From positions 1-64,000 of the forward strand of contig NW_005434660.1 of the NCBI RefSeq assembly GCF_000315625.1: a DNA stretch of 64,000 nucleotides. Direction: 5' to 3'. Below are positions 2,379 through 18,594 of the stretch, one piece after another; position 1 is the stretch's first letter, and each line of letters begins with the position of its first letter. Position numbers and translations under genes: made by a program. The DNA comes from Guillardia theta CCMP2712 (taxonomy: Eukaryota > Protista > Cryptophyta). A model generated the notes under the pieces. The model ran no database searches and was not told where the DNA came from. It was given only the letters and a program-made list of their open reading frames with translations.

Positions 2379-2415
2379 CTCGCTTTGTATTTCAGAATTT
2401 TTCCTTGTAGATCTT
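2378..2415 (-). pseudogene. Downstream half of the interrupted RT of an older copia element
   Basis: Minus-strand translation (K)DLQGKILKYKAR continues ...WVYTTKKD from 10389-10580 and aligns with KDLHGNILKRKAR of the inserted element. Confidence 0.8.
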
Positions 2416-2841
2416 TAATCGAATCAACCTCCACCTCACTGGCCAGAATCTATTTAACCCAAGATCCACCAAAGACTAATTCTCAGTACACCTGAGATCC
2501 TTACACCAACCTTATTCACCTCAACGATACACAGCTGTGCAGTCTCTATCACCTTCACTGATGGTGATAGAACTCTCAGAAGAACCACACAACACCACCA
2601 ACACTTCCTTTATTCACAGCAGTCACCTTCCCTTCAGTCCCTTGCACCCAGTACAATGCACAGCGCGCAGTGGACACGTGTCCTCCTAACCCCCTCTTCT
2701 CCGCCTGACCCTCAGGCTCGTCGATTCCTTAATTCCAGACCTATGTCGAAACCCACTTCCATCTCGCTGAGCTTCGTCCATCGATGAGACGCAATACCCT
2801 GAACTTCTCGCCGTCTCCAAGAACTTATCCGAGTTCTTACA
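2416..2841 (-). repeat. 3' LTR (426 bp)
   Basis: Direct repeat of 9962-10388. On the element strand it starts TGTAAG and ends GATTA, with AATAAA at about 2608-2613. Confidence 0.95.
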
Positions 2842-2849
2842 CCCTCCCT
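2842..2849 (-). promoter_or_regulatory. Polypurine tract (AGGGAGGG) abutting the 3' LTR
   Basis: Plus-strand CCCTCCCT immediately follows the LTR; this is the canonical PPT position. Confidence 0.8.
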
Positions 2850-4114: not shown

Positions 4115-4603
4115 TCACAGAATGCCATCGTTCTCATTAGGATGAGAGTCATCACTGTAGCATACCCCTTGAGCGTTGAAATCTTCTCCAAATAGAAACG
4201 AACCAATTGCTTTCCACCTCGTAAACGGCAGAATTTTCGTGAACAGGTCCGCAGGCTGAAACTTAGTAGAAACTTTCACAGGAAGTAATTCTCCCTCATC
4301 CACCATGAGAACAGCAAACTTAGCACGTAAGTCGATGTGCTTCAGTCTAGAATATGCTCGTTTCTCGGTCAACAAACGAATACACGGCTCATTATCCAGC
4401 AGGAGCATCGTCGGACGTTGCTGGCAAAACCCTAACTGTTGAAGTAAGCTTCGATACATCTTGATATGCTTGGCGACTACCGATGTCGCATAGATTTCTG
4501 CCTCTGACGATGAAAGTGATATGACTTTCTGCGCTTTCGAACCATATGAAATAACTCCTCCGTTCATTACGATAGCCCATCCGGACTGACTTCGTCGCGT
4601 CAA
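4115..4603 (-). pseudogene. Copia RNase H, frameshifted from RT
   Basis: TRRSQSGW..ISYGSKAQKVISLSSSEAE..DNEP..KHIDLR..QPADLFTK. The usual (D)xxGD residues after ASDS are missing, consistent with a small frameshifting deletion near 4604. Confidence 0.9.
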
Positions 4604-5747
4604 GACTATCACTCGCAGCTACGAGTTCATTGTGAAACACCTCCTGATTAACAGATACACCTCTCTGATGGTAAACAATACAAATATCTCTCGTCGTGTA
4701 CAGATACCTCGCCAAGTGAACCAATGCATCCCAGTCACGCACTCTGGGTGCCCGTGCAAATCTGCTTAAGAGACTGACCGCGAAGGAAATGTCAGCTCTT
4801 GTCCCATTAGCAACGTACAAGATTGTTCCAAGAAGAGCCTGATATTGTCTCACCGAGAACTTATCCAACAATTCTCCCTCTAGATGATAACTCCGCATGT
4901 ACACTCCAGGCAAGATAGTAAACACTGAACGAAGAGCTATTCCAAATTTCTCAACCAGCTGTTCAATAAAATGCTTCTGACTCAAGGTAATAGTTCCTTT
5001 CGTCAAATCTTGGTGAACACGAATACCCAGGAATGTACCTGTAGCTTCACTTCCAGAAAAGTCGAATACCTTGCTCAAGCAGTCCAAAAAATAATTACAG
5101 ACTTCTTGATTCTCACATACCAGAAGAAGATCATCCACCCATGTCGTGATGAGAATTCTTGAGCCGTTGTGTTCATATCTGTAAATGATTTCATCATGGC
5201 CAACAGGTTCCGCGCCCAGACGCAGGAATTCTCGAGACAGCTTTTCCCACCATCGTCGCGGAGCCGTTCGCGTCCCATATATCGCTTTGGTTACTTTGAG
5301 CAAAACATTCGGAGGCAAAGCCATGATGTCAGGCGGTATCATGAACATCGGTTCGTTCAATTCACTGTATAGGAACGCGGCCGCGATATCTCGGAAGGCG
5401 ATAATCCATCCATTTCCTGCCGCTATGCTGAGTAACAACCGAATGTTATCCATCGACGTCGTCGGCGCAAACAACTCCTCGGACGTGGGTAAAAGATTGC
5501 CCATCACAACCAACCTTGCTTTTCTCTTCAGAATGTTGCCATGTAAATCTTTCTTTGAGGAATAAACCCACATCGCTCTCGCAAGTATTTTGCCTCGTGT
5601 TTCATCAGACCTCGGGACCACTTCCCAAACTCGCCTTTCTTCCATCTTCTGAATCTCAGCTCGTTCAGCTGCCTCCCACAATTCTCTATCCTTGTGCAAC
5701 AACATCTCCCTTCGATTGCGAGGATCTGCCGTCGAACTCGAGTCTTG
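4604..5747 (-). CDS. Copia reverse transcriptase (RVT_2 type)
   Basis: KARLVVMG, DIAAAFLYS, KAIYG, WVDD motifs. In the same frame as the upstream gag-PR-IN ORF, separated from it by a single TGA. Confidence 0.93.
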
Positions 5748-8700
5748 TCACAGTACTGATGGCGGAGCTCGCGACAGAAATGCTGCAGAGAGTTTGACAG
5801 CTTCCCATACAGGAACAACTAGCGCCATGTTGGTGACAAGCATACGAGAGTCTGGAAAACATTGTGTCAACTCACTTGGACCAAGATCAATACAGTCTGG
5901 ATCACGAGCAACATCAATGTCATCCCCTGGCTCCATGAGTGGGACCACATCATTCCACCGTTCCCGTCTCAATGGTATCCATCGTGCAGAGTGCTGAGAA
6001 GTAGTCGAACGATTACCCTCGTCCAATACGAACAGTACCTCTTTTCCATCGCCGTTGAGCACCTTTCCAGGTACCAGCTGAGATGACAGAGGAGACTTCC
6101 TGTGCATAAGAAAGACATCGGGATTTCCTCGAACTGTCTTTTCCACCAGCTGCGAAAGGATGTTATCCCCCTTTTGAGGAAACGCTCGAAAGTAATAATC
6201 GTTACACCCTGTCAACTCGAAGACATTCTTCGGCAAAACTCCTGATTGTAGCTCATCCCCAGGCAACAACTCAGATGTCTCTGCCTCAGACATAGCAATC
6301 ATGGTAACTTCCTTCCCCATAGACAAAATCCGTACGTTCTCACTGTCCGGATGGATTAATATCCAGTACTTGTCGTCAAACGTAACACGCACCAAGAATG
6401 TATCATCTTTGAAGACAACTTGAGTAATCGTCCCCGTTCGAACCTTCCCATCATCCATTACAACTTCAGCCCGCCTGTTGATGAAGCGGTTTTCGGCATC
6501 CCGTCTCTGCTTACGAAAGTCTCGTCTGGTACGACATGTTTTGGTCGACGACGCTGCCTCTGTATCCGTATGATCCGCATCCTCTCGGCCACCGTCAACC
6601 ATCACTGTAGGCACATAGTCTTCATCGCTGTCCTGGCACACCATCTCAGCAGCCCTTACTCCCTCATCATCCGACTCCAGTGAATGATCCTCCAACCGTG
6701 TTCTCTTTCGACGACCACTAGTCCGAGCATTCACTGCCTCTGACCGTTCATCTTCAACACCCTTGACAGGCGAATCATCCTCCATGTCAATATCGTGCTT
6801 TACCACCACTTCAGGATCCTCTTGCCAATTCATCCGTCCCGCACGTCGAAATGGAAAGAAGAATTCATCACAGGTCAGATTATTCGTGTGATAGATTTTG
6901 TTGTCGTCAACACACCATACCAAGTAGCCAATGGTATGCCCAGGAAAAGCGTTTGCATTTCCGAGCATAATGCCCTGTTTAGCTGGATCTTCAATCTTCG
7001 AACTGCGTACATTATTCTTGAAGAATGTCATACACCCAAAGGTCTTGAGAGATTTGAAGTCGAAAACATCTCCATTATAGATTGTATACGGAGAAAGATT
7101 GCCGAAATTCCTGAAACTCGGGAGAGCATTGTACAGGTACGTAGCCTGCATAACAGAAAATTCCCATTTCTCGATAGGCAAAGCACTCTGTTTGAGCAAA
7201 GTTCTGTGGATAGTACTGACTGCTCGAATTCCTCTCTCAGCCAGCGAATTGTAAACTTGACTGTAATCAGGAATCCGATCCCACTTCAAACCCGTCTCAC
7301 GAACGAATGCCTCCAACTCTGGAGAAGAAAACTCACTGCCGTTATCAGATATGATGCGTTGAACTCCGTTTCTCTTGACACTTTTCTCCTCCTGTCGAAG
7401 TAACTCCATCAGAATATCACTCGTTTGACTCTTGGACTTCATGGGACGCACAATCAGGTATCCGGAAAAAGCGTCGACAACTATAAGAAAGTAACGATAA
7501 CCCGATGGTTCAGGGACTGCAATCATATCTTTCAAGTCTACATACCACAGAGCATTTACATCTCCAGCACGTTCCTGTCGAAATGAGGTTTGTTTGTGAA
7601 CAGGGCGTGACACAAATTTCGAAATCCTACACACGTGACACGGAGAATGAATCAACCGCCTATTGAATGTGATGTATTTGACCGTATCCGCAAGCAACTT
7701 TTGTACTCGACAATCAGGGTGCCCCGTTTTCATGTGCCACAGAACCGCATCAGATAGACTCTGTGTTGACTTCCCATCGAAAGAAGGTCCAGGAGTGACA
7801 TGTGCTTTAGTCAAACAGACTGTTCCAGCCTCCGCTGAAACACAAAAGATTGGCACATCACCTGCCACAGAATCATGCATCGGACCTCTGGTTGTCAACA
7901 GATACAACTTGTCCCGCTGAATCAGAGGAATCCTGATCTTGCCATCCTCCGAAGCCACATAGGATTTGACCGTGTTCTTCGACCCCCGTCCAACAATGTA
8001 ATACTTGGATCCCAGAAAATCATCCAGACTCACAAGTGGTACAGGAAGGACAGGACAAACTCGAACATTCTCCAATACTATATTGTCCGACTCACCATCT
8101 GCACCGACAATTTGCAAATTTAGCTTGCCATACTTGGTACAATTAATCTTTCCTCCTGCCGTCATGACAAAGAAATCGTCTCCCGATTGTACGTCTGAGA
8201 GGAGGGATTCGTCCCCAACCATGGTAACATTTGCACCCGAATCAAGCAAAAAATTGACAACCCTTCCGTCACCGTCTCCCACCATACTCTGCATTGCCAT
8301 TCCTTGAATATCAGTCATCGACATCGTTGAATCAATGCCAAACTGAAACGCAAAGAAGGATCGCCATTCCGCCTGACGGCGACCTGCCTGAGCATTGCTT
8401 TCTGAAACATTTTGCTGTACCGTCCTCTCAAAAGGATTGTCCGACACCGGACTACGGCCACGTCCCCGATGGTTAGGCTCAAACGTCTCCTGCCATGGTC
8501 CAACCGGCTGCTCACCGTCTGCACCTGACCTCCTTCCCCCCTGGATTTCCCTGGCCAACCGCAGTACAGCCTCGCCGAGAGCCTGAGGAGAAAATTCATG
8601 CACATTGTTTCGCCGCTCATGATATCCTCCCGAACGATCACCTCTTGAGAAACCATCAGACTCGCCTCTGCGTGGATTGTAGTTATGCGTCGTCCAATGC

Positions 8701-9590
8701 TCCCCTCTACCTCGTCCGCGCATCCCTCTACCAGCCGGACGATCATACGGCTTCCCCCGCTGCTGATGATGACCTCGAAATCCTGAGCCTCTTCCCCGAA
8801 AATTATTCCCTTGAAAACCACCGACTCTTCCTTGGTGATTTCGAAAATCATTCGATCCAGCACCAGCGGAGCCTCCACGACCGTATCCGCCACGAGACCC
8901 ATCAACATGGTAGGCGCCCCTGCGCCGCATTCCCTGACCCGGATGCTCACCTCGGCCTCGCGTACTCTCCCTCGCGTCCAACGTGCTTCCATCCTCCTGA
9001 CTGCCAGATGCATTATCCACAGGCGGCGACTCATTGCTGCCTCTCGAGTCTCCCTTTTCCTTACCACCCTGTCCTCCACTTTCAGACGCCTTGTCTGCAT
9101 TCGGTTGACTAACCGTAGCTTGCACCTCCGAGGCTGCCACATTAACTGACGCAGTGCCCGACTGTGTTTTCTCACCCCCAGCAGTAAAAAATACCTGTTC
9201 ATCATGCAAATTCACAGCCCAAGAGTACACCTCCTCCCAAGTCAATTCGGTTGACAACTTGGACCGCTTATTCAAGCGCGCGACATCTCGAATATCAACA
9301 CAATCTGAAACATAACATTGCTTGATCAGCTCCTCCACCAAAATCATTTCCAAGGCTTTCACTGATTCCTCTCCCGCTACATCTTCCAACTTGTTAAGCA
9401 GGATCTTCATCTGGACCATAACGCTGTGGAAGGTAGATATGTCAGGCAATTTCGACTTTGCCAGCGTCAGAAGCTCCATCCGCGTTTTATCCGGAGTGGC
9501 ATTGAGATTCCCACTGCGCTTTCTGACTTCCCATATCATATACGCCAGAGCTTTGATCGGAGCCAACTTGGACTTGAATCCTCCTGACAT
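5748..9590 (-). CDS. Copia gag-protease-integrase polyprotein (1280 aa)
   Basis: FLLDSGA protease; WHMKTGH..CHVC (HHCC); YVDL..SDNGSEF..NSLAER (DDE); TFGC and GYLVW copia IN C-terminal motifs. Confidence 0.95.
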   Translation of the reverse strand: MSGGFKSKLAPIKALAYMIWEVRKRSGNLNATPDKTRMELLTLAKSKLPDISTFHSVMVQMKILLNKLEDVAGEESVKALEMILVEELIKQCYVSDCVDIRDVARLNKRSKLSTELTWEEVYSWAVNLHDEQVFFTAGGEKTQSGTASVNVAASEVQATVSQPNADKASESGGQGGKEKGDSRGSNESPPVDNASGSQEDGSTLDARESTRGRGEHPGQGMRRRGAYHVDGSRGGYGRGGSAGAGSNDFRNHQGRVGGFQGNNFRGRGSGFRGHHQQRGKPYDRPAGRGMRGRGRGEHWTTHNYNPRRGESDGFSRGDRSGGYHERRNNVHEFSPQALGEAVLRLAREIQGGRRSGADGEQPVGPWQETFEPNHRGRGRSPVSDNPFERTVQQNVSESNAQAGRRQAEWRSFFAFQFGIDSTMSMTDIQGMAMQSMVGDGDGRVVNFLLDSGANVTMVGDESLLSDVQSGDDFFVMTAGGKINCTKYGKLNLQIVGADGESDNIVLENVRVCPVLPVPLVSLDDFLGSKYYIVGRGSKNTVKSYVASEDGKIRIPLIQRDKLYLLTTRGPMHDSVAGDVPIFCVSAEAGTVCLTKAHVTPGPSFDGKSTQSLSDAVLWHMKTGHPDCRVQKLLADTVKYITFNRRLIHSPCHVCRISKFVSRPVHKQTSFRQERAGDVNALWYVDLKDMIAVPEPSGYRYFLIVVDAFSGYLIVRPMKSKSQTSDILMELLRQEEKSVKRNGVQRIISDNGSEFSSPELEAFVRETGLKWDRIPDYSQVYNSLAERGIRAVSTIHRTLLKQSALPIEKWEFSVMQATYLYNALPSFRNFGNLSPYTIYNGDVFDFKSLKTFGCMTFFKNNVRSSKIEDPAKQGIMLGNANAFPGHTIGYLVWCVDDNKIYHTNNLTCDEFFFPFRRAGRMNWQEDPEVVVKHDIDMEDDSPVKGVEDERSEAVNARTSGRRKRTRLEDHSLESDDEGVRAAEMVCQDSDEDYVPTVMVDGGREDADHTDTEAASSTKTCRTRRDFRKQRRDAENRFINRRAEVVMDDGKVRTGTITQVVFKDDTFLVRVTFDDKYWILIHPDSENVRILSMGKEVTMIAMSEAETSELLPGDELQSGVLPKNVFELTGCNDYYFRAFPQKGDNILSQLVEKTVRGNPDVFLMHRKSPLSSQLVPGKVLNGDGKEVLFVLDEGNRSTTSQHSARWIPLRRERWNDVVPLMEPGDDIDVARDPDCIDLGPSELTQCFPDSRMLVTNMALVVPVWEAVKLSAAFLSRAPPSVL

Positions 9591-9938
9591 AGCCCATGGA
9601 ACAGGAAATAATGGCTTCAGATAGGATCGAAAGTATTGGCCAATGAGTCTTGATCAATTCTTCACTGAGGTCCAATTTTCCTCCTCCCATGGTAAAAGCA
9701 ATGTCGAAAAATCAGTAGCAACGTTCCACACAAGAATCGACTCCGACCTTCCAAACTGAGCTTCCAAGCACAAGCGTAAAAAATGCAAAAAAAATCGAGG
9801 CCAACTTCCAAACAACGATTCCAAACAATCGAATCACCGACTCAAATAGCAACAATGAACCGAACTTACTCTTTGTTCCAGTTCAGACCGTACGGTAAAT
9901 CACAGTTGCGCAACAACAGTAAAAAATGAGAACTGAGA

Positions 9939-9962
9939 ACAAAGAGAAAATTTTCTCTTTGT
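9939..9962. promoter_or_regulatory. 24-bp perfect palindrome at the primer-binding-site position
   Basis: ACAAAGAGAAAATTTTCTCTTTGT abuts the 5' LTR; there is no TGG-starting tRNA-complementary PBS. Confidence 0.8.
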
Positions 9963-10388
9963 AATCGAATCAACCTCCACCTCACTGGCCAGAATCTATT
10001 TAACCCAAGATCCACCAAAGACTAATTCTCAGTACACCTGAGATCCTTACACCAACCTTATTCACCTCAACGATACACAGCTGTGCAGTCTCTATCACCT
10101 TCACTGATGGTGATAGAACTCTCAGAAGAACCACACAACACCACCAACACTTCCTTTATTCACAGCAGTCACCTTCCCTTCAGTCCCTTGCAACCCAGTA
10201 CAATGCACAGCGCGCAGTGGACACGTGTCCTCCTAACCCCCTCTTCTCCGCCTGACCCTCAGGCTCGTCGATTCCTTAATTCCAGACCTATGTCGAAACC
10301 CACTTCCATCTCGCTGAGCTTCGTCCATCGATGAGACGCAATACCCTGAACTTCTCGCCGTCTCCAAGAACTTATCCGAGTTCTTACA
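9962..10388 (-). repeat. 5' LTR (427 bp; 9960-10388 if the TG..CA end is used)
   Basis: Direct repeat of 2416-2841. Confidence 0.95.
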
Positions 10389-10580
10389 ATCTTTCTTAGT
10401 AGTATACACCCACATGCCGCGTGCTATGATTTTTCCTCGTGTTTCTTCAGAATCCCTTGAAACTATGGTCCAAACCTTGCGTTCCTCCATCTTGTGAATT
10501 TCAGCTCGTTCAGCCGCTTCCCACAGCTCCCTGTCTGGACGCATCAACATCTCTTTCCTATTCCTAGGATCAGCTGTCAT
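10389..10580 (-). pseudogene. Upstream half of the RT of an older, related copia element (insertion target)
   Basis: TADPRNRKEMLMRPDRELWEAAERAEIHKMEERKVW..RGMWVYTTKKD is homologous but not identical to the inserted element's RT. Confidence 0.9.
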
Positions 10581-15700: not shown

Positions 15701-18059
15701 CTACGTATGCTGCGGAGCGAAACTCATCCATCCCCTTGGCCTCCGCATCGCATCCTCCTTCGAAAGCATCATGATATACTGAGTTACTCCCCTCATTTGA
15801 CTCTCCTGCTCCTGGTTTGCCTTCACTCCCTGAGATGTCAAGCCTTGATCTCGTCCCCAGCAGGGCATTTCCTCATGCCCTGAAGGTACAACGAACACAA
15901 AGTTTACCCTCTCAAACTTGTTCTTGGCTTGCAGAGCTTTCAAGATGCTGAGCAATGAGTCCACTTTGATAGGATGTTTCCCCGCTCGTGTTATCTGGAA
16001 CATGTAGAGAACCCCGCTGGCAGACAATGACATCCCATCCATGCAAGCGAAGTTTAATGCCTTTGGCTTACAGTATGCATTCGGCATGATCACCCACTCC
16101 TCCAAGTCTCTGATTGATGATGCAAATTCAATGTACGGTTGCGATCTCTTCAACTTCAGCTTCTTTAACCCGTTTCTATCGCCCTTATCCTTCTCCAGCC
16201 TTCGCAGATTGTATTTTCCTCCTCCCTTCAGCACCTCATGCGCAATGTGTTCAAAAGCTACACCTGCTGCTGACTCATAGCCAGAATTAGGACTCGAAAA
16301 AGCAAAGTCGACAACATGATCCCAATCCCTTTTCACAAGGGCCTCAAATATCATCGTCTCGGCCTTCTTCGAGCATATTCGAGCGGTAAAGGATCTGTAG
16401 TCAGTGCTGGGGGAAAGGTGAATCAGTTTCGATGGCATTCCAAGGTCTTCATTCACTGCTGCATCCATCTTCCTCTTGAGTGATGACACTGATTCTATTC
16501 CTTCAACAGCCTGCTCAAGTGTCTCTAAAGGTTTCACGACGATATTTCTCGGCACATTGCCCCAATCCTCTACGATCTTCATCACTTCATCGGAGTCAAT
16601 ACGCCCCCATTGCATCATGATGAAGAGTGACATCTCATCGTCTGACCACAACGGCAAGAAATATCTCTTCGCCGATCCAGTATTCACAATTTCCTTGAAC
16701 ATCCCATACTTCGGTGAAGAGATTATGATTGTTTTGGCGGTTCGTGACATTGAATAGCTCCCCTGGTTTTTGTACAGATCACAGATATACCAGCGCCTAA
16801 ACATTTGGAGAAAGCGTTGCGCTACGGATCCATCCATGAACAGGTTCCATGCTTCTCCATCAAAGTACCAATATTCACTCCCTATCTGATACACTACTTC
16901 CTCACCAGGCCGGAGGAGCTGAAGAAGTAAGAAGTATGCGAAGCAGGACTTCCCGATCCCTGGAGTACCTGTGAGGATCACTTGATGGCATCCTTGATTG
17001 GTGTCCATGCCCTCTAGCGTCTCTGGGTCCAACTTGAAATCCTCTGCAATTTTCCGCCTCATCTCGAAGTAGCACTCTCGTATGAAGAGCTTGTTTCCAA
17101 GTGTCTCGTGGCCTCCTAAGCATGCGGAGAAGCTGACGTATTCATTAGCCCGTAAAACCTTTCCTGCGCATGCGGTAGTCCAGAGCTCTTTCAAGAAACT
17201 TAGCATGCCAACTAGCATAAGTCCTGTTAGTACCCATGATAGCCACATTCAATTCTGTTTCACCTTCAGGTCTTGACACACTGTCTCTAAGTTGCACAGG
17301 ACGTGGAATAAGCCTCTCAACCTGCTCATCCTTGTCCAAGAGCAGCTTCTCCCTGTCTAAAAGCCGCTGCTGGTACGCTACAAGCTGCTTCTTGTCCTCT
17401 ACAAGCTGCTGCTGGTACGCTACAAGCTGCTGCTGGTACGCTACAAGCTGCTGCACAAGCTGCATGTGGACCTCCTTCAGCATTTGGTTATTTTGATCTT
17501 GCATCCTTCTCAACACATCTGTGATCTCTTTTTGTACACCTTTGATCTCTTTTTGTACACCTTTGATCTCTTGTTGTACACCTTTGATCTCTTGTTGTAC
17601 ATCTCCGATCTCTTCAATTTTCCTCTCTCGTTGTTCTCCCTCGATTTCTGATTGCACCCCCTCGATCCCTTCGTCCTGCTTTGTCAGAATCTCGAGATCA
17701 AGAATGTTGGAGCTCCCCTGCATGACGGCATTTGTGAATTGTTTTCTTGATTTTTTGCCATTCTTATCTGCAGCGTCAATGGCTATGTCATAGACACTCA
17801 ACATGTGTGGAGCTCCCTCTTGAACAGAAGCGTTCTTCTCATCTCCGCCATCATTTCCTCCCCGTATCCCAAGACAAGAGCGCTGACAAACAGCACTCTG
17901 CTCGCGATGGAACCGAGTCCACTGAAGGCAACACAATCCCTGCAGTAACAACACAAGTTCAAAAAGCTTTTATCTAGCACTGAGGATTATGCCTACCTCT
18001 GAGCTCGAAATGATAATTGAGCTCAACCAAAGGAATCCAAGAGGCGACACGAGCGACAT
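15701..18059 (-). CDS. Crinkler/RHS-like protein, copy 2 (complete): signal peptide + coiled coil + P-loop NTPase + C-terminal PD-(D/E)xK-type REase
   Basis: Introns 17940-17996 and 17212(or 17224)-17263 join the three exons in frame. Motifs: ILTGTPGIGKS, WYICD, IIISSP, YFLPLWS, WGNVPR, GVAFEHIAH, KPKALNFACMD..YMFQIT..HPIK. Confidence 0.85.
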
Positions 18060-18152
18060 GGCACCCAAGACGCACTTTCCCCCCTGCTGGCAAAGAGCAA
18101 ACTTAGGCTTGACAAGAAGGCTTGTTTGACGTGGAGGTTGCCTGTATTCCCA

Positions 18153-18594
18153 TCTGCCTCTGCCTCTGCCTCTGCCTCTGCCTCTGCCTCTGCCTCTGCC
18201 TCTGCCTCTGCCTCTGCCTCTGCCTCTGCCTCTGCCTCTGCCTCTGCCTCTGCCTCTGCCTCTGCCTCTGCCTCTGCCTCTGCCTCTGCCTCTGCCTCCG
18301 CCTCCGCCTCCGCCTCCGCCTCCGCCTCCGCCTCCGCCTCTGCCTCTGCCTCTGCCTCTGCCTCTGCCTCTGTCTCTGCCTCTGCCTCTGCCTCTGCCTC
18401 TGGCTCTGGCTCTGTCTCTGTCTCTGTCTCTGTCTCTGTCTCTGTCTCTGTCTCTGTCTCTGTCTCTGCCTCTGTCTCTGTCTCTGTCTCTGTCTCTGTC
18501 TCTGTCTCTGCCTCTGCCTCTGCCTCTGCCTCTGCCTCTGCCTCTGTCTCTGTCTCTGTCTCTGTCTCTGTCTCTGTCTCTGTCTCCGTCTCTC
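18153..18594. repeat. Compound hexanucleotide microsatellite (GCCTCT/GCCTCC/GTCTCT)n
   Basis: Read directly; accounts for the low-complexity ORFs in this interval. Confidence 0.97.

Follow-up and report, generated by a model that had tools for sequence, protein, structure and literature searches.

The position of the minus-strand primer determines where an LTR ends. To our knowledge, the start of reverse transcription without a tRNA primer-binding site (PBS) has been solved only for Tf1-type elements, in which the primer duplex is 11 nt long. Copia elements lacking a PBS are known from fungi, where the GalEa elements carry a Conserved Hairpin Site, that is, 9 nt that follow the LTR and form a palindrome together with the LTR-final A, and a near-copy of them 2–41 nt downstream (Donnart et al. 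2017, PMC5445492). This site is assumed to replace the PBS, and no mechanism has been established since its description in 2017 (PMC5445492); a literature search found it mentioned in just one other paper. For the plant TAR lineage of copia elements, self-priming has been predicted (Neumann et al. 2019, PMC6317226). The element described here came to attention through a prediction, made from the letters of the DNA, of a copia retrotransposon that has a palindrome in place of a PBS and might prime itself. The account of known priming modes given with that original prediction (tRNA or half-tRNA primers for copia, self-priming for Tf1-type gypsy elements) was incomplete, because it omitted the TAR elements (PMC6317226) and the GalEa site with its palindrome and hairpin (PMC5445492).

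The element is a Ty1/copia LTR retrotransposon on the minus strand of the window, i.e. the whole 64-kb stretch of Guillardia theta CCMP2712 DNA that was analyzed (NW_005434660.1, positions 1–64,000); its features are collected in Table 1, together with those of the related families discussed below. The two LTRs are identical at 426 of 427 positions, a single indel being the sole difference, and the LTR boundary was set by their alignment and by the flanking target duplication AAGAT. At 9962 the 5' LTR ends in ...GATTCGATTA, and CAAAG follows directly. The predicted copia identity was confirmed by the domains RVT_2, rve (aa 678–776 of the ORF 9590..5748) and SH3_retrovirus and by the position of the integrase upstream of the reverse transcriptase (RT), the order of genes characteristic of copia. 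The RT shares 99% identity with a UniRef/MMETSP protein labelled Guillardia theta (P0002), to which the integrase–RT–RNase H (RH) region of the window copy gives a continuous match. Although its LTRs are near-identical, the window copy is defective. Compared with full-length copies it lacks about 520 nt of 5' gag, with a breakpoint near 9643; an in-frame stop (5748–5750) lies between the integrase ORF and the RT ORF, and the RNase H region contains a frameshift near 4605.

Table 1. Positions of the features of the window element (family 1) and of example elements of related families in Guillardia theta CCMP2712
Feature	Position	Strand	Description	Basis
5' LTR	9962..10388	(-)	427 nt, TGTAAG...GATTCGATTA	direct repeat with 2416-2841
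3' LTR	2416..2841	(-)	426 nt	LTR-LTR alignment
Target duplication	10389-10393 and 2411-2415		AAGAT, 5 bp	flanks the LTR pair
AATAAA poly(A) signal	10155..10160	(-)	inside the LTR	read from sequence
Poly(A) addition site	10141..10142	(-)	R/U5 boundary	raw RNA reads
U5	9962..10140	(-)	179 nt	poly(A) site to LTR end
24-nt perfect palindrome	9939..9962	(-)	ACAAAGAGAAAATTTTCTCTTTGT; first base is the final A of the 5' LTR	
5' arm	9951..9961	(-)	CAAAGAGAAAA; primer-binding position directly 3' of U5	adjoins LTR end
3' arm, candidate self-primer	9940..9950	(-)	UUUUCUCUUUG; 3'-terminal G lies opposite the first base after the LTR	
Alternative stem, 5' strand	9930..9946	(-)	part of 3' arm plus downstream extension	
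Alternative stem, 3' strand	9869..9884	(-)	includes ACAAAGAG, which repeats the LTR-final A and the start of the 5' arm	
10-nt palindrome	9887..9896	(-)	ACCGTACGGT; in alternative-stem loop, broken in copy L011	
10-nt palindrome	9905..9914	(-)	GTTGCGCAAC; in alternative-stem loop, kept in family-1 subfamilies	
ORF, part of gag, protease, integrase	5748..9590	(-)	rve, SH3_retrovirus, Pol_BBD	Pfam
Reverse transcriptase ORF	4392..5705	(-)	RVT_2	Pfam
Polypurine tract	2842..2849	(-)	AGGGAGGG; directly 5' of the 3' LTR	
Family 2, example	C30:102959-112091		LTR 490 nt, TGTAAG...CCAATA; target duplication GTTAA	RT 62-63%, Gag 31% identical to family 1
Family 3, example	C251:53211-62449	(-)	LTR 924 nt, TGTTGAAG...CTTCAACA; target duplication TAGAC	RT 46-47%, Gag ~24-25% identical to family 1
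Family 5, LTR	G000:C29:449786-450174 (L073:987-1375)		389 nt, ends in CA, followed by GGTTATAAAAGCC (GGTTAT start); no palindrome	

The Gag protein of family 1 has no CCHC zinc knuckle, and a long RG/RGG-rich stretch is found there (window 8700–9100, minus-strand ORF). Older copia debris surrounds the element: an RT fragment of 73% identity lies just upstream of the 5' LTR (10383–10550, minus strand), and rearranged pieces of an old family-1 LTR lie downstream of the 3' LTR (1956–2091 on the plus strand, ~2343–2380 on the minus strand). On a larger scale, the element is bracketed by a direct duplication (267–1906 and 16528–18179, about 16.3 kb apart, 95–100% identical) that contains 21-nt and 12-nt tandem repeats. 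In a contig of the public run X2, telomere-type repeats (TTTAGGG)n adjoin the family-1 LTR end at window position 9962; such repeats also break a family-2 LTR near a contig end (L070, G000:C12:1000-1900).

On the sense strand, the 5' LTR is followed by CAAAGAGAAAA-TTTTCTCTTTG-T, which together with the LTR-final A makes up the 24-nt palindrome. This is the longest perfect palindrome of the 64-kb window. Shuffled windows contain palindromes with arms of at least 9 nt about 0.5 times each; arms of 12 nt are expected an estimated 0.008 times per window, and arms of 10 nt at one fixed site have a chance of about 2e-6. The rank of the palindrome in the window, the shuffles and the equal layout at the same boundary in two other families place it beyond chance. 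Part of the 3' arm, with its downstream extension, can pair instead with a segment further down the leader (16 of 17 nt, one bulged U), and this alternative stem is the RNAfold minimum-energy fold of family 1 (-32.8 kcal/mol), in which the 5' arm is left unpaired. The palindrome, the competing stem and the two 10-nt palindromes in its loop are thus all present where the original prediction had placed them. Its further suggestion that the 10-nt palindromes serve as dimerisation signals found no support, as they have no counterparts in families 2 and 3; judged by the modelled energies, the long palindrome would be the better candidate.

A search of the genome (87.1 Mb, 669 contigs) recovered 12 family-1 copies with a leader, and the palindrome is identical in all 12, including two (L011 and L012) with a different upstream LTR, in which the last ~30 nt of U5 and the leader are kept as well. 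In a decayed relative on contig C16 the 5' arm is disrupted. A diverged copy on contig C151 keeps the 22-nt core, its LTR-final A being replaced by G, which makes the outermost pair a G-U pair; the absence of a downstream repeat from the first 110 nt in this copy suggests that the element may be able to do without the competing stem. Further down the leader there is also a direct repeat of the final ~10 nt of U5, as GATTCGATT in family 1 (9825–9845 compared with 9962–9975) and as GATTCCAA in family 2 (leader of L069), and no clear counterpart of this repeat was seen in family 3.

Protein searches of the genome identified two further families with palindromes of their own at this boundary. The sequence CAAAAAGAAAA-TTTTCTTTTTG follows the family-2 LTR, and the palindrome is 30 nt long in most copies, extending 4 nt into U5. 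In family 3 the sequence after the LTR is TATTCTAAAA-(A or T)-TTTTAGAATA-T; the unpaired central base is T in two copies (L061, L064) and A in four (L060, L062, L063, L065). Recurrent flipping of this base is not supported, because the two T copies share two nearby SNPs and one event is enough. The LTR-final A is part of the palindrome in all three families, and a GGGAGGG tract lies 5' of the 3' LTR in families 2 and 3 as in family 1. When pairs are counted from the outside, family 1 differs from family 2 by one two-sided change and from family 3 by six. The 3' arm thus co-varies with the 5' arm, giving seven two-sided compensatory changes in total, with no broken pair and no G-U pair in the three families. 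Given their differing sequences, an origin of the family-2 and family-3 palindromes by recent recombination with one common leader is excluded by the comparison.

All three families also possess a downstream copy of the U5/palindrome junction (ACAAAGAG, AATACAAAAAGA and ATATTCTA in families 1, 2 and 3), which can pair with the 3' arm and with family-specific flanking bases across loops of 47, 9 and 8 nt, respectively. Both stems, the palindrome and its competitor, are conserved with compensatory changes between the three families, a pattern that the original prediction had proposed looking for. RNAfold predicts the two folds of family 2 to be nearly equal (-13.9 versus -12.2), and in family 3 it prefers the palindrome hairpin, the alternative stem being weak (9 bp) and not chosen. 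A homodimer formed through the palindrome is predicted to be 8–11 kcal/mol more stable than two hairpins in each of the three families. The family-2 leader contains no further palindrome of at least 8 nt; the family-3 leader has a different 12-nt palindrome elsewhere, and neither has a counterpart of ACCGTACGGT or GTTGCGCAAC. Outside the G. theta genome, one ENA metagenome contig with the family-2 palindrome was found (L068, ERZ930071); this environmental sequence holds a family-2-type element (87% RT-RH amino acid identity) in which the palindrome is unchanged and the downstream repeat is present in duplicate. The JGI metagenome contigs proved too short, and three other hits (L122, L124, L125) are distant copia elements or tandem arrays and were uninformative. 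Word-based and full HMMER searches returned no RT-RH relative of more than 36% identity outside Guillardia or metagenome sequences, and a literature search found no paper on these Guillardia elements.

The absence of a tRNA-type PBS, also part of the original prediction, was borne out in the three families. None of them has a TGG after the LTR. Against 29 distinct nuclear tRNAs with 24 anticodons, taken from the best 63 of 1940 Rfam tRNA candidates, the first 11 nt after the LTR pair at best at 7, 7 and 9 of 11 positions (families 1, 2 and 3; G-U allowed), which is within the range of shuffled sequences. The genomic matches listed for the 11-mer include none within the best 63 tRNA genes, both lists being partial. 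Genome-wide patterns combining 9 nt of the needed primer with a downstream T-loop gave 12 matches versus 9 for the control, and 2 versus 0, which is chance level; ARAGORN found no tRNA at three loci inspected. Priming by a tRNA is therefore unsupported by both the pairing with the 29 tRNAs and the T-loop-anchored patterns; the palindrome, identical in the 12 leader copies, is not confined to one copy. Tf1-type priming was rejected, the best complement anywhere in the LTRs reaching only 8/11, 7/11 and 7/11 in families 1, 2 and 3. An inverted duplication of U5, as would be left by an integrated snap-back product, was not seen: the pattern used is the antisense of the normal junction, and each locus matched on one strand only. 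The inverted LTR pieces downstream of the 3' LTR (1956–2091 and ~2343–2380), considered as a snap-back product, are part of the old rearranged LTR.

Family 5, a distantly related set of copia elements in G. theta (RT 28–29% identical to family 1), served as positive control for the tRNA screen. Its gag ATG is located only 30 nt after the LTR. The control failed: the site GGTTATAAAAGCC that follows the LTR recovered its own copies only, with no match among the 29 tRNAs, although it looks like a half-tRNA type. Since family 5 has no palindrome, the palindrome is a trait of a lineage and not a habit of the genome as a whole.

With regard to the GalEa elements, the layout found in G. theta is not unprecedented. 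Families 1–3 also lack a tRNA PBS, their palindrome directly follows the LTR and includes its final A, and a downstream near-copy is able to pair, with loops of 47, 9 and 8 nt as compared to 2–41 nt in GalEa. The logic of the site is the same, whereas sequence, arm length, A/A mismatch and protein signatures differ. The fungal palindrome, of 10 nt (ACTGATCAGT or ACTAATTAGT), is unable to fold back on its own sequence, whereas the G. theta palindromes comprise 23–30 nt with arms of 10–15 nt, and the downstream copy pairs with the 3' half of the palindrome only. The G. theta sequences are unrelated to the fungal CHSeq1 (CTGATCAGT or CTAATTAGT). A strictly conserved A/A mismatch is found in the fungal elements only, family 1 having one bulged U. 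The protein motifs KARLVV, WVDD and TRADI of G. theta contrast with KSRLV(I/V), QTDD and CQPEA of the fungal elements. The fungal gag has a C2C4C4H finger, whereas in the G. theta gag no zinc knuckle was seen and the protein is RG-rich instead; and the host is a cryptophyte alga.

Other systems share single aspects of the site. Tf1/sushi-type elements (Ty3/gypsy chromoviruses) likewise have no tRNA PBS and use a segment of about 11 nt of their own RNA that complements the site beside U5, and by analogy the primer would be generated by cleavage where an RNA-RNA duplex ends. The Tf1 primer, however, consists of the first 11 nt of the transcript, whereas the complement in G. theta is located immediately downstream of the site, with none in the LTR, and a cut there would sever the genome, so that a second RNA would be needed as template. 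The half-tRNA-primed elements copia, Ty5, Osser and Bianca are also members of the copia superfamily without a TGG-type PBS, but the G. theta sites complement internal regions of the partial tRNA set no better than chance. The retroviral dimer initiation site (DIS), for example that of HIV-1, like the G. theta site, is a palindrome in the 5' leader that is able to pair two genomic RNAs; however, it is a 6-nt palindrome in a hairpin loop apart from the tRNA PBS, whereas the G. theta palindrome occupies the PBS position.

The RNA evidence comes from a 3'-tag library, the sole run of raw reads (X22); other runs consist of contigs of uncertain type. Loose T-runs on the plus strand occur directly before 10141 and 10142 in 96 and 48 reads, respectively, i.e. 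the poly(A) tails begin 14–19 nt downstream of the AATAAA signal in raw RNA reads with the same species label. On their other side, the same poly(A) reads run into the polypurine region that precedes a 3' LTR. These tailed reads indicate that family 1 is transcribed, that R ends at 10141, and that U5 comprises 179 nt. Depth is about zero across 9803–9976; with so little coverage of the leader, the library says nothing about a cut at the palindrome.

Taken together, these features lead us to propose that a copia lineage independent of tRNAs starts minus-strand synthesis at the palindrome and primes itself, either through a fold-back hairpin or through a partner RNA. We put the probability of this proposal at about even; any one version of self-priming is less probable than that. 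The 10–11 nt directly 3' of U5 and the adjacent reverse complement would form a fold-back hairpin of 10–13 predicted bp; alternatively, the same arms would join two RNAs into a dimer by a duplex of 22–30 bp. If an endonuclease cut the RNA at the 3' foot of the palindrome, the 3' arm would stay annealed and its 3'-OH would point towards the last base of U5. The nuclease would likely be the RNase H of the element itself, by analogy with Tf1, and reverse transcriptase would then copy the 179 nt of U5, and R, to give strong-stop DNA. Priming from the 3' arm would account for the exact coincidence of the LTR end with the start of the palindrome, and the expectation, already contained in the original prediction, that this arm would prime precisely at the observed LTR end fits the boundary set by LTR alignment and target duplication. 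The downstream junction copy would compete for the 3' arm and keep it in the alternative fold, in which the 5' arm is single-stranded.

We infer that the 3' arm acts as the primer from its position and its co-variation with the 5' arm; the cleavage, the identity of the primer, its action in cis or in trans and any switching between folds are likewise inferred. With 10–11 nt, the arm has the length of the Tf1 primer duplex, and primer-length arms together with compensatory evolution leave fold-back priming and partner-RNA priming as the narrowed set of mechanisms. G-U pairs are usually tolerated in an RNA stem on which only structural selection acts. The strict Watson-Crick symmetry of the palindromes is what would be expected if every cycle copied one arm into the other, in the way that a primer is copied into its PBS. 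The coincidence of LTR end and palindrome start in three families and this Watson-Crick-only symmetry favor self-priming after a cut at the 3' foot. A cut at the foot of the hairpin would sever R-U5 from the coding RNA, and a second, intact RNA would be needed as template, an extra requirement that counts against the proposal. The merit of the trans route, via a duplex between two genomes, is that one intact template would be left. Priming in trans within an RNA dimer might be a third general priming mode, in which the palindromic site joins the two packaged genomes, one of them, cut at the end of its 3' arm, is sacrificed as primer for its intact partner, and every cycle renews the PBS from the primer arm, and which might be common to the cryptophyte lineage and fungal GalEa, by common descent or convergence. 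We offer this generalization as a speculation that we consider rather doubtful.

The predicted stability of the homodimer in all three families also speaks for another explanation, in which the palindrome serves dimerisation or packaging, or binds a protein, and abuts U5 by chance, priming then following another route without the 3' arm. Retroviral dimer initiation sites are indeed palindromes (PMC5445492), and no cleavage product was seen in the RNA library with its almost absent leader depth. However, the palindrome starts exactly at the LTR end, the position of the minus-strand primer, in three families, there is no other PBS candidate beside U5 (no TGG, no tRNA match, no complement in the LTR), and an RNA dimer signal does not need a Watson-Crick-only symmetry free of G-U pairs; on balance, we regard this explanation as unlikely. 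We judge it quite improbable that the 5' arm is primed by a host RNA, be it an unusual fragment of a tRNA or some other small RNA, and that the 3' arm is a primer mimic masking the site until priming. The differing 5' arms of the three families would require at least two host primers, while each family has an exact complement adjacent to the site. The best tRNA pairing is at chance level, the T-loop patterns stay at control level, ARAGORN detects no tRNA at the three loci inspected, and the listed genomic 11-mer matches fall outside the best 63 tRNA genes. On the other side, half-tRNA priming is known in copia lineages (PMC6317226), the minimum-energy fold of family 1 leaves the 5' arm single-stranded, and the tRNA screen was partial, its 29 sequences being drawn from the best 63 of 1940 candidates.

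Within a family the copies are young and near-identical, so that conservation among them proves little, which speaks for the palindrome being a functionless feature, a neutral by-product or chance property of one family. Nevertheless, palindromes that differ in sequence occupy one and the same boundary in three families at 46–63% RT identity, 10-nt arms at a fixed site have only the small chance given above, and the fungal GalEa elements have an equal layout, which makes a neutral origin extremely improbable. We regard self-priming, through the fold-back hairpin or a partner RNA, as the best reading.

The cryptophyte families represent a second set of copia elements without a PBS, with proteins that lack the signature motifs of fungal GalEa, and the conservation of the site between families is the main new result. 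The near-identity of the copies suggests recent activity. The elements provide a testable system, as G. theta is a culturable alga and transcription of family 1 yields polyadenylated RNA. Pipelines for LTR annotation that demand a tRNA PBS may miss or mis-score elements of this kind.
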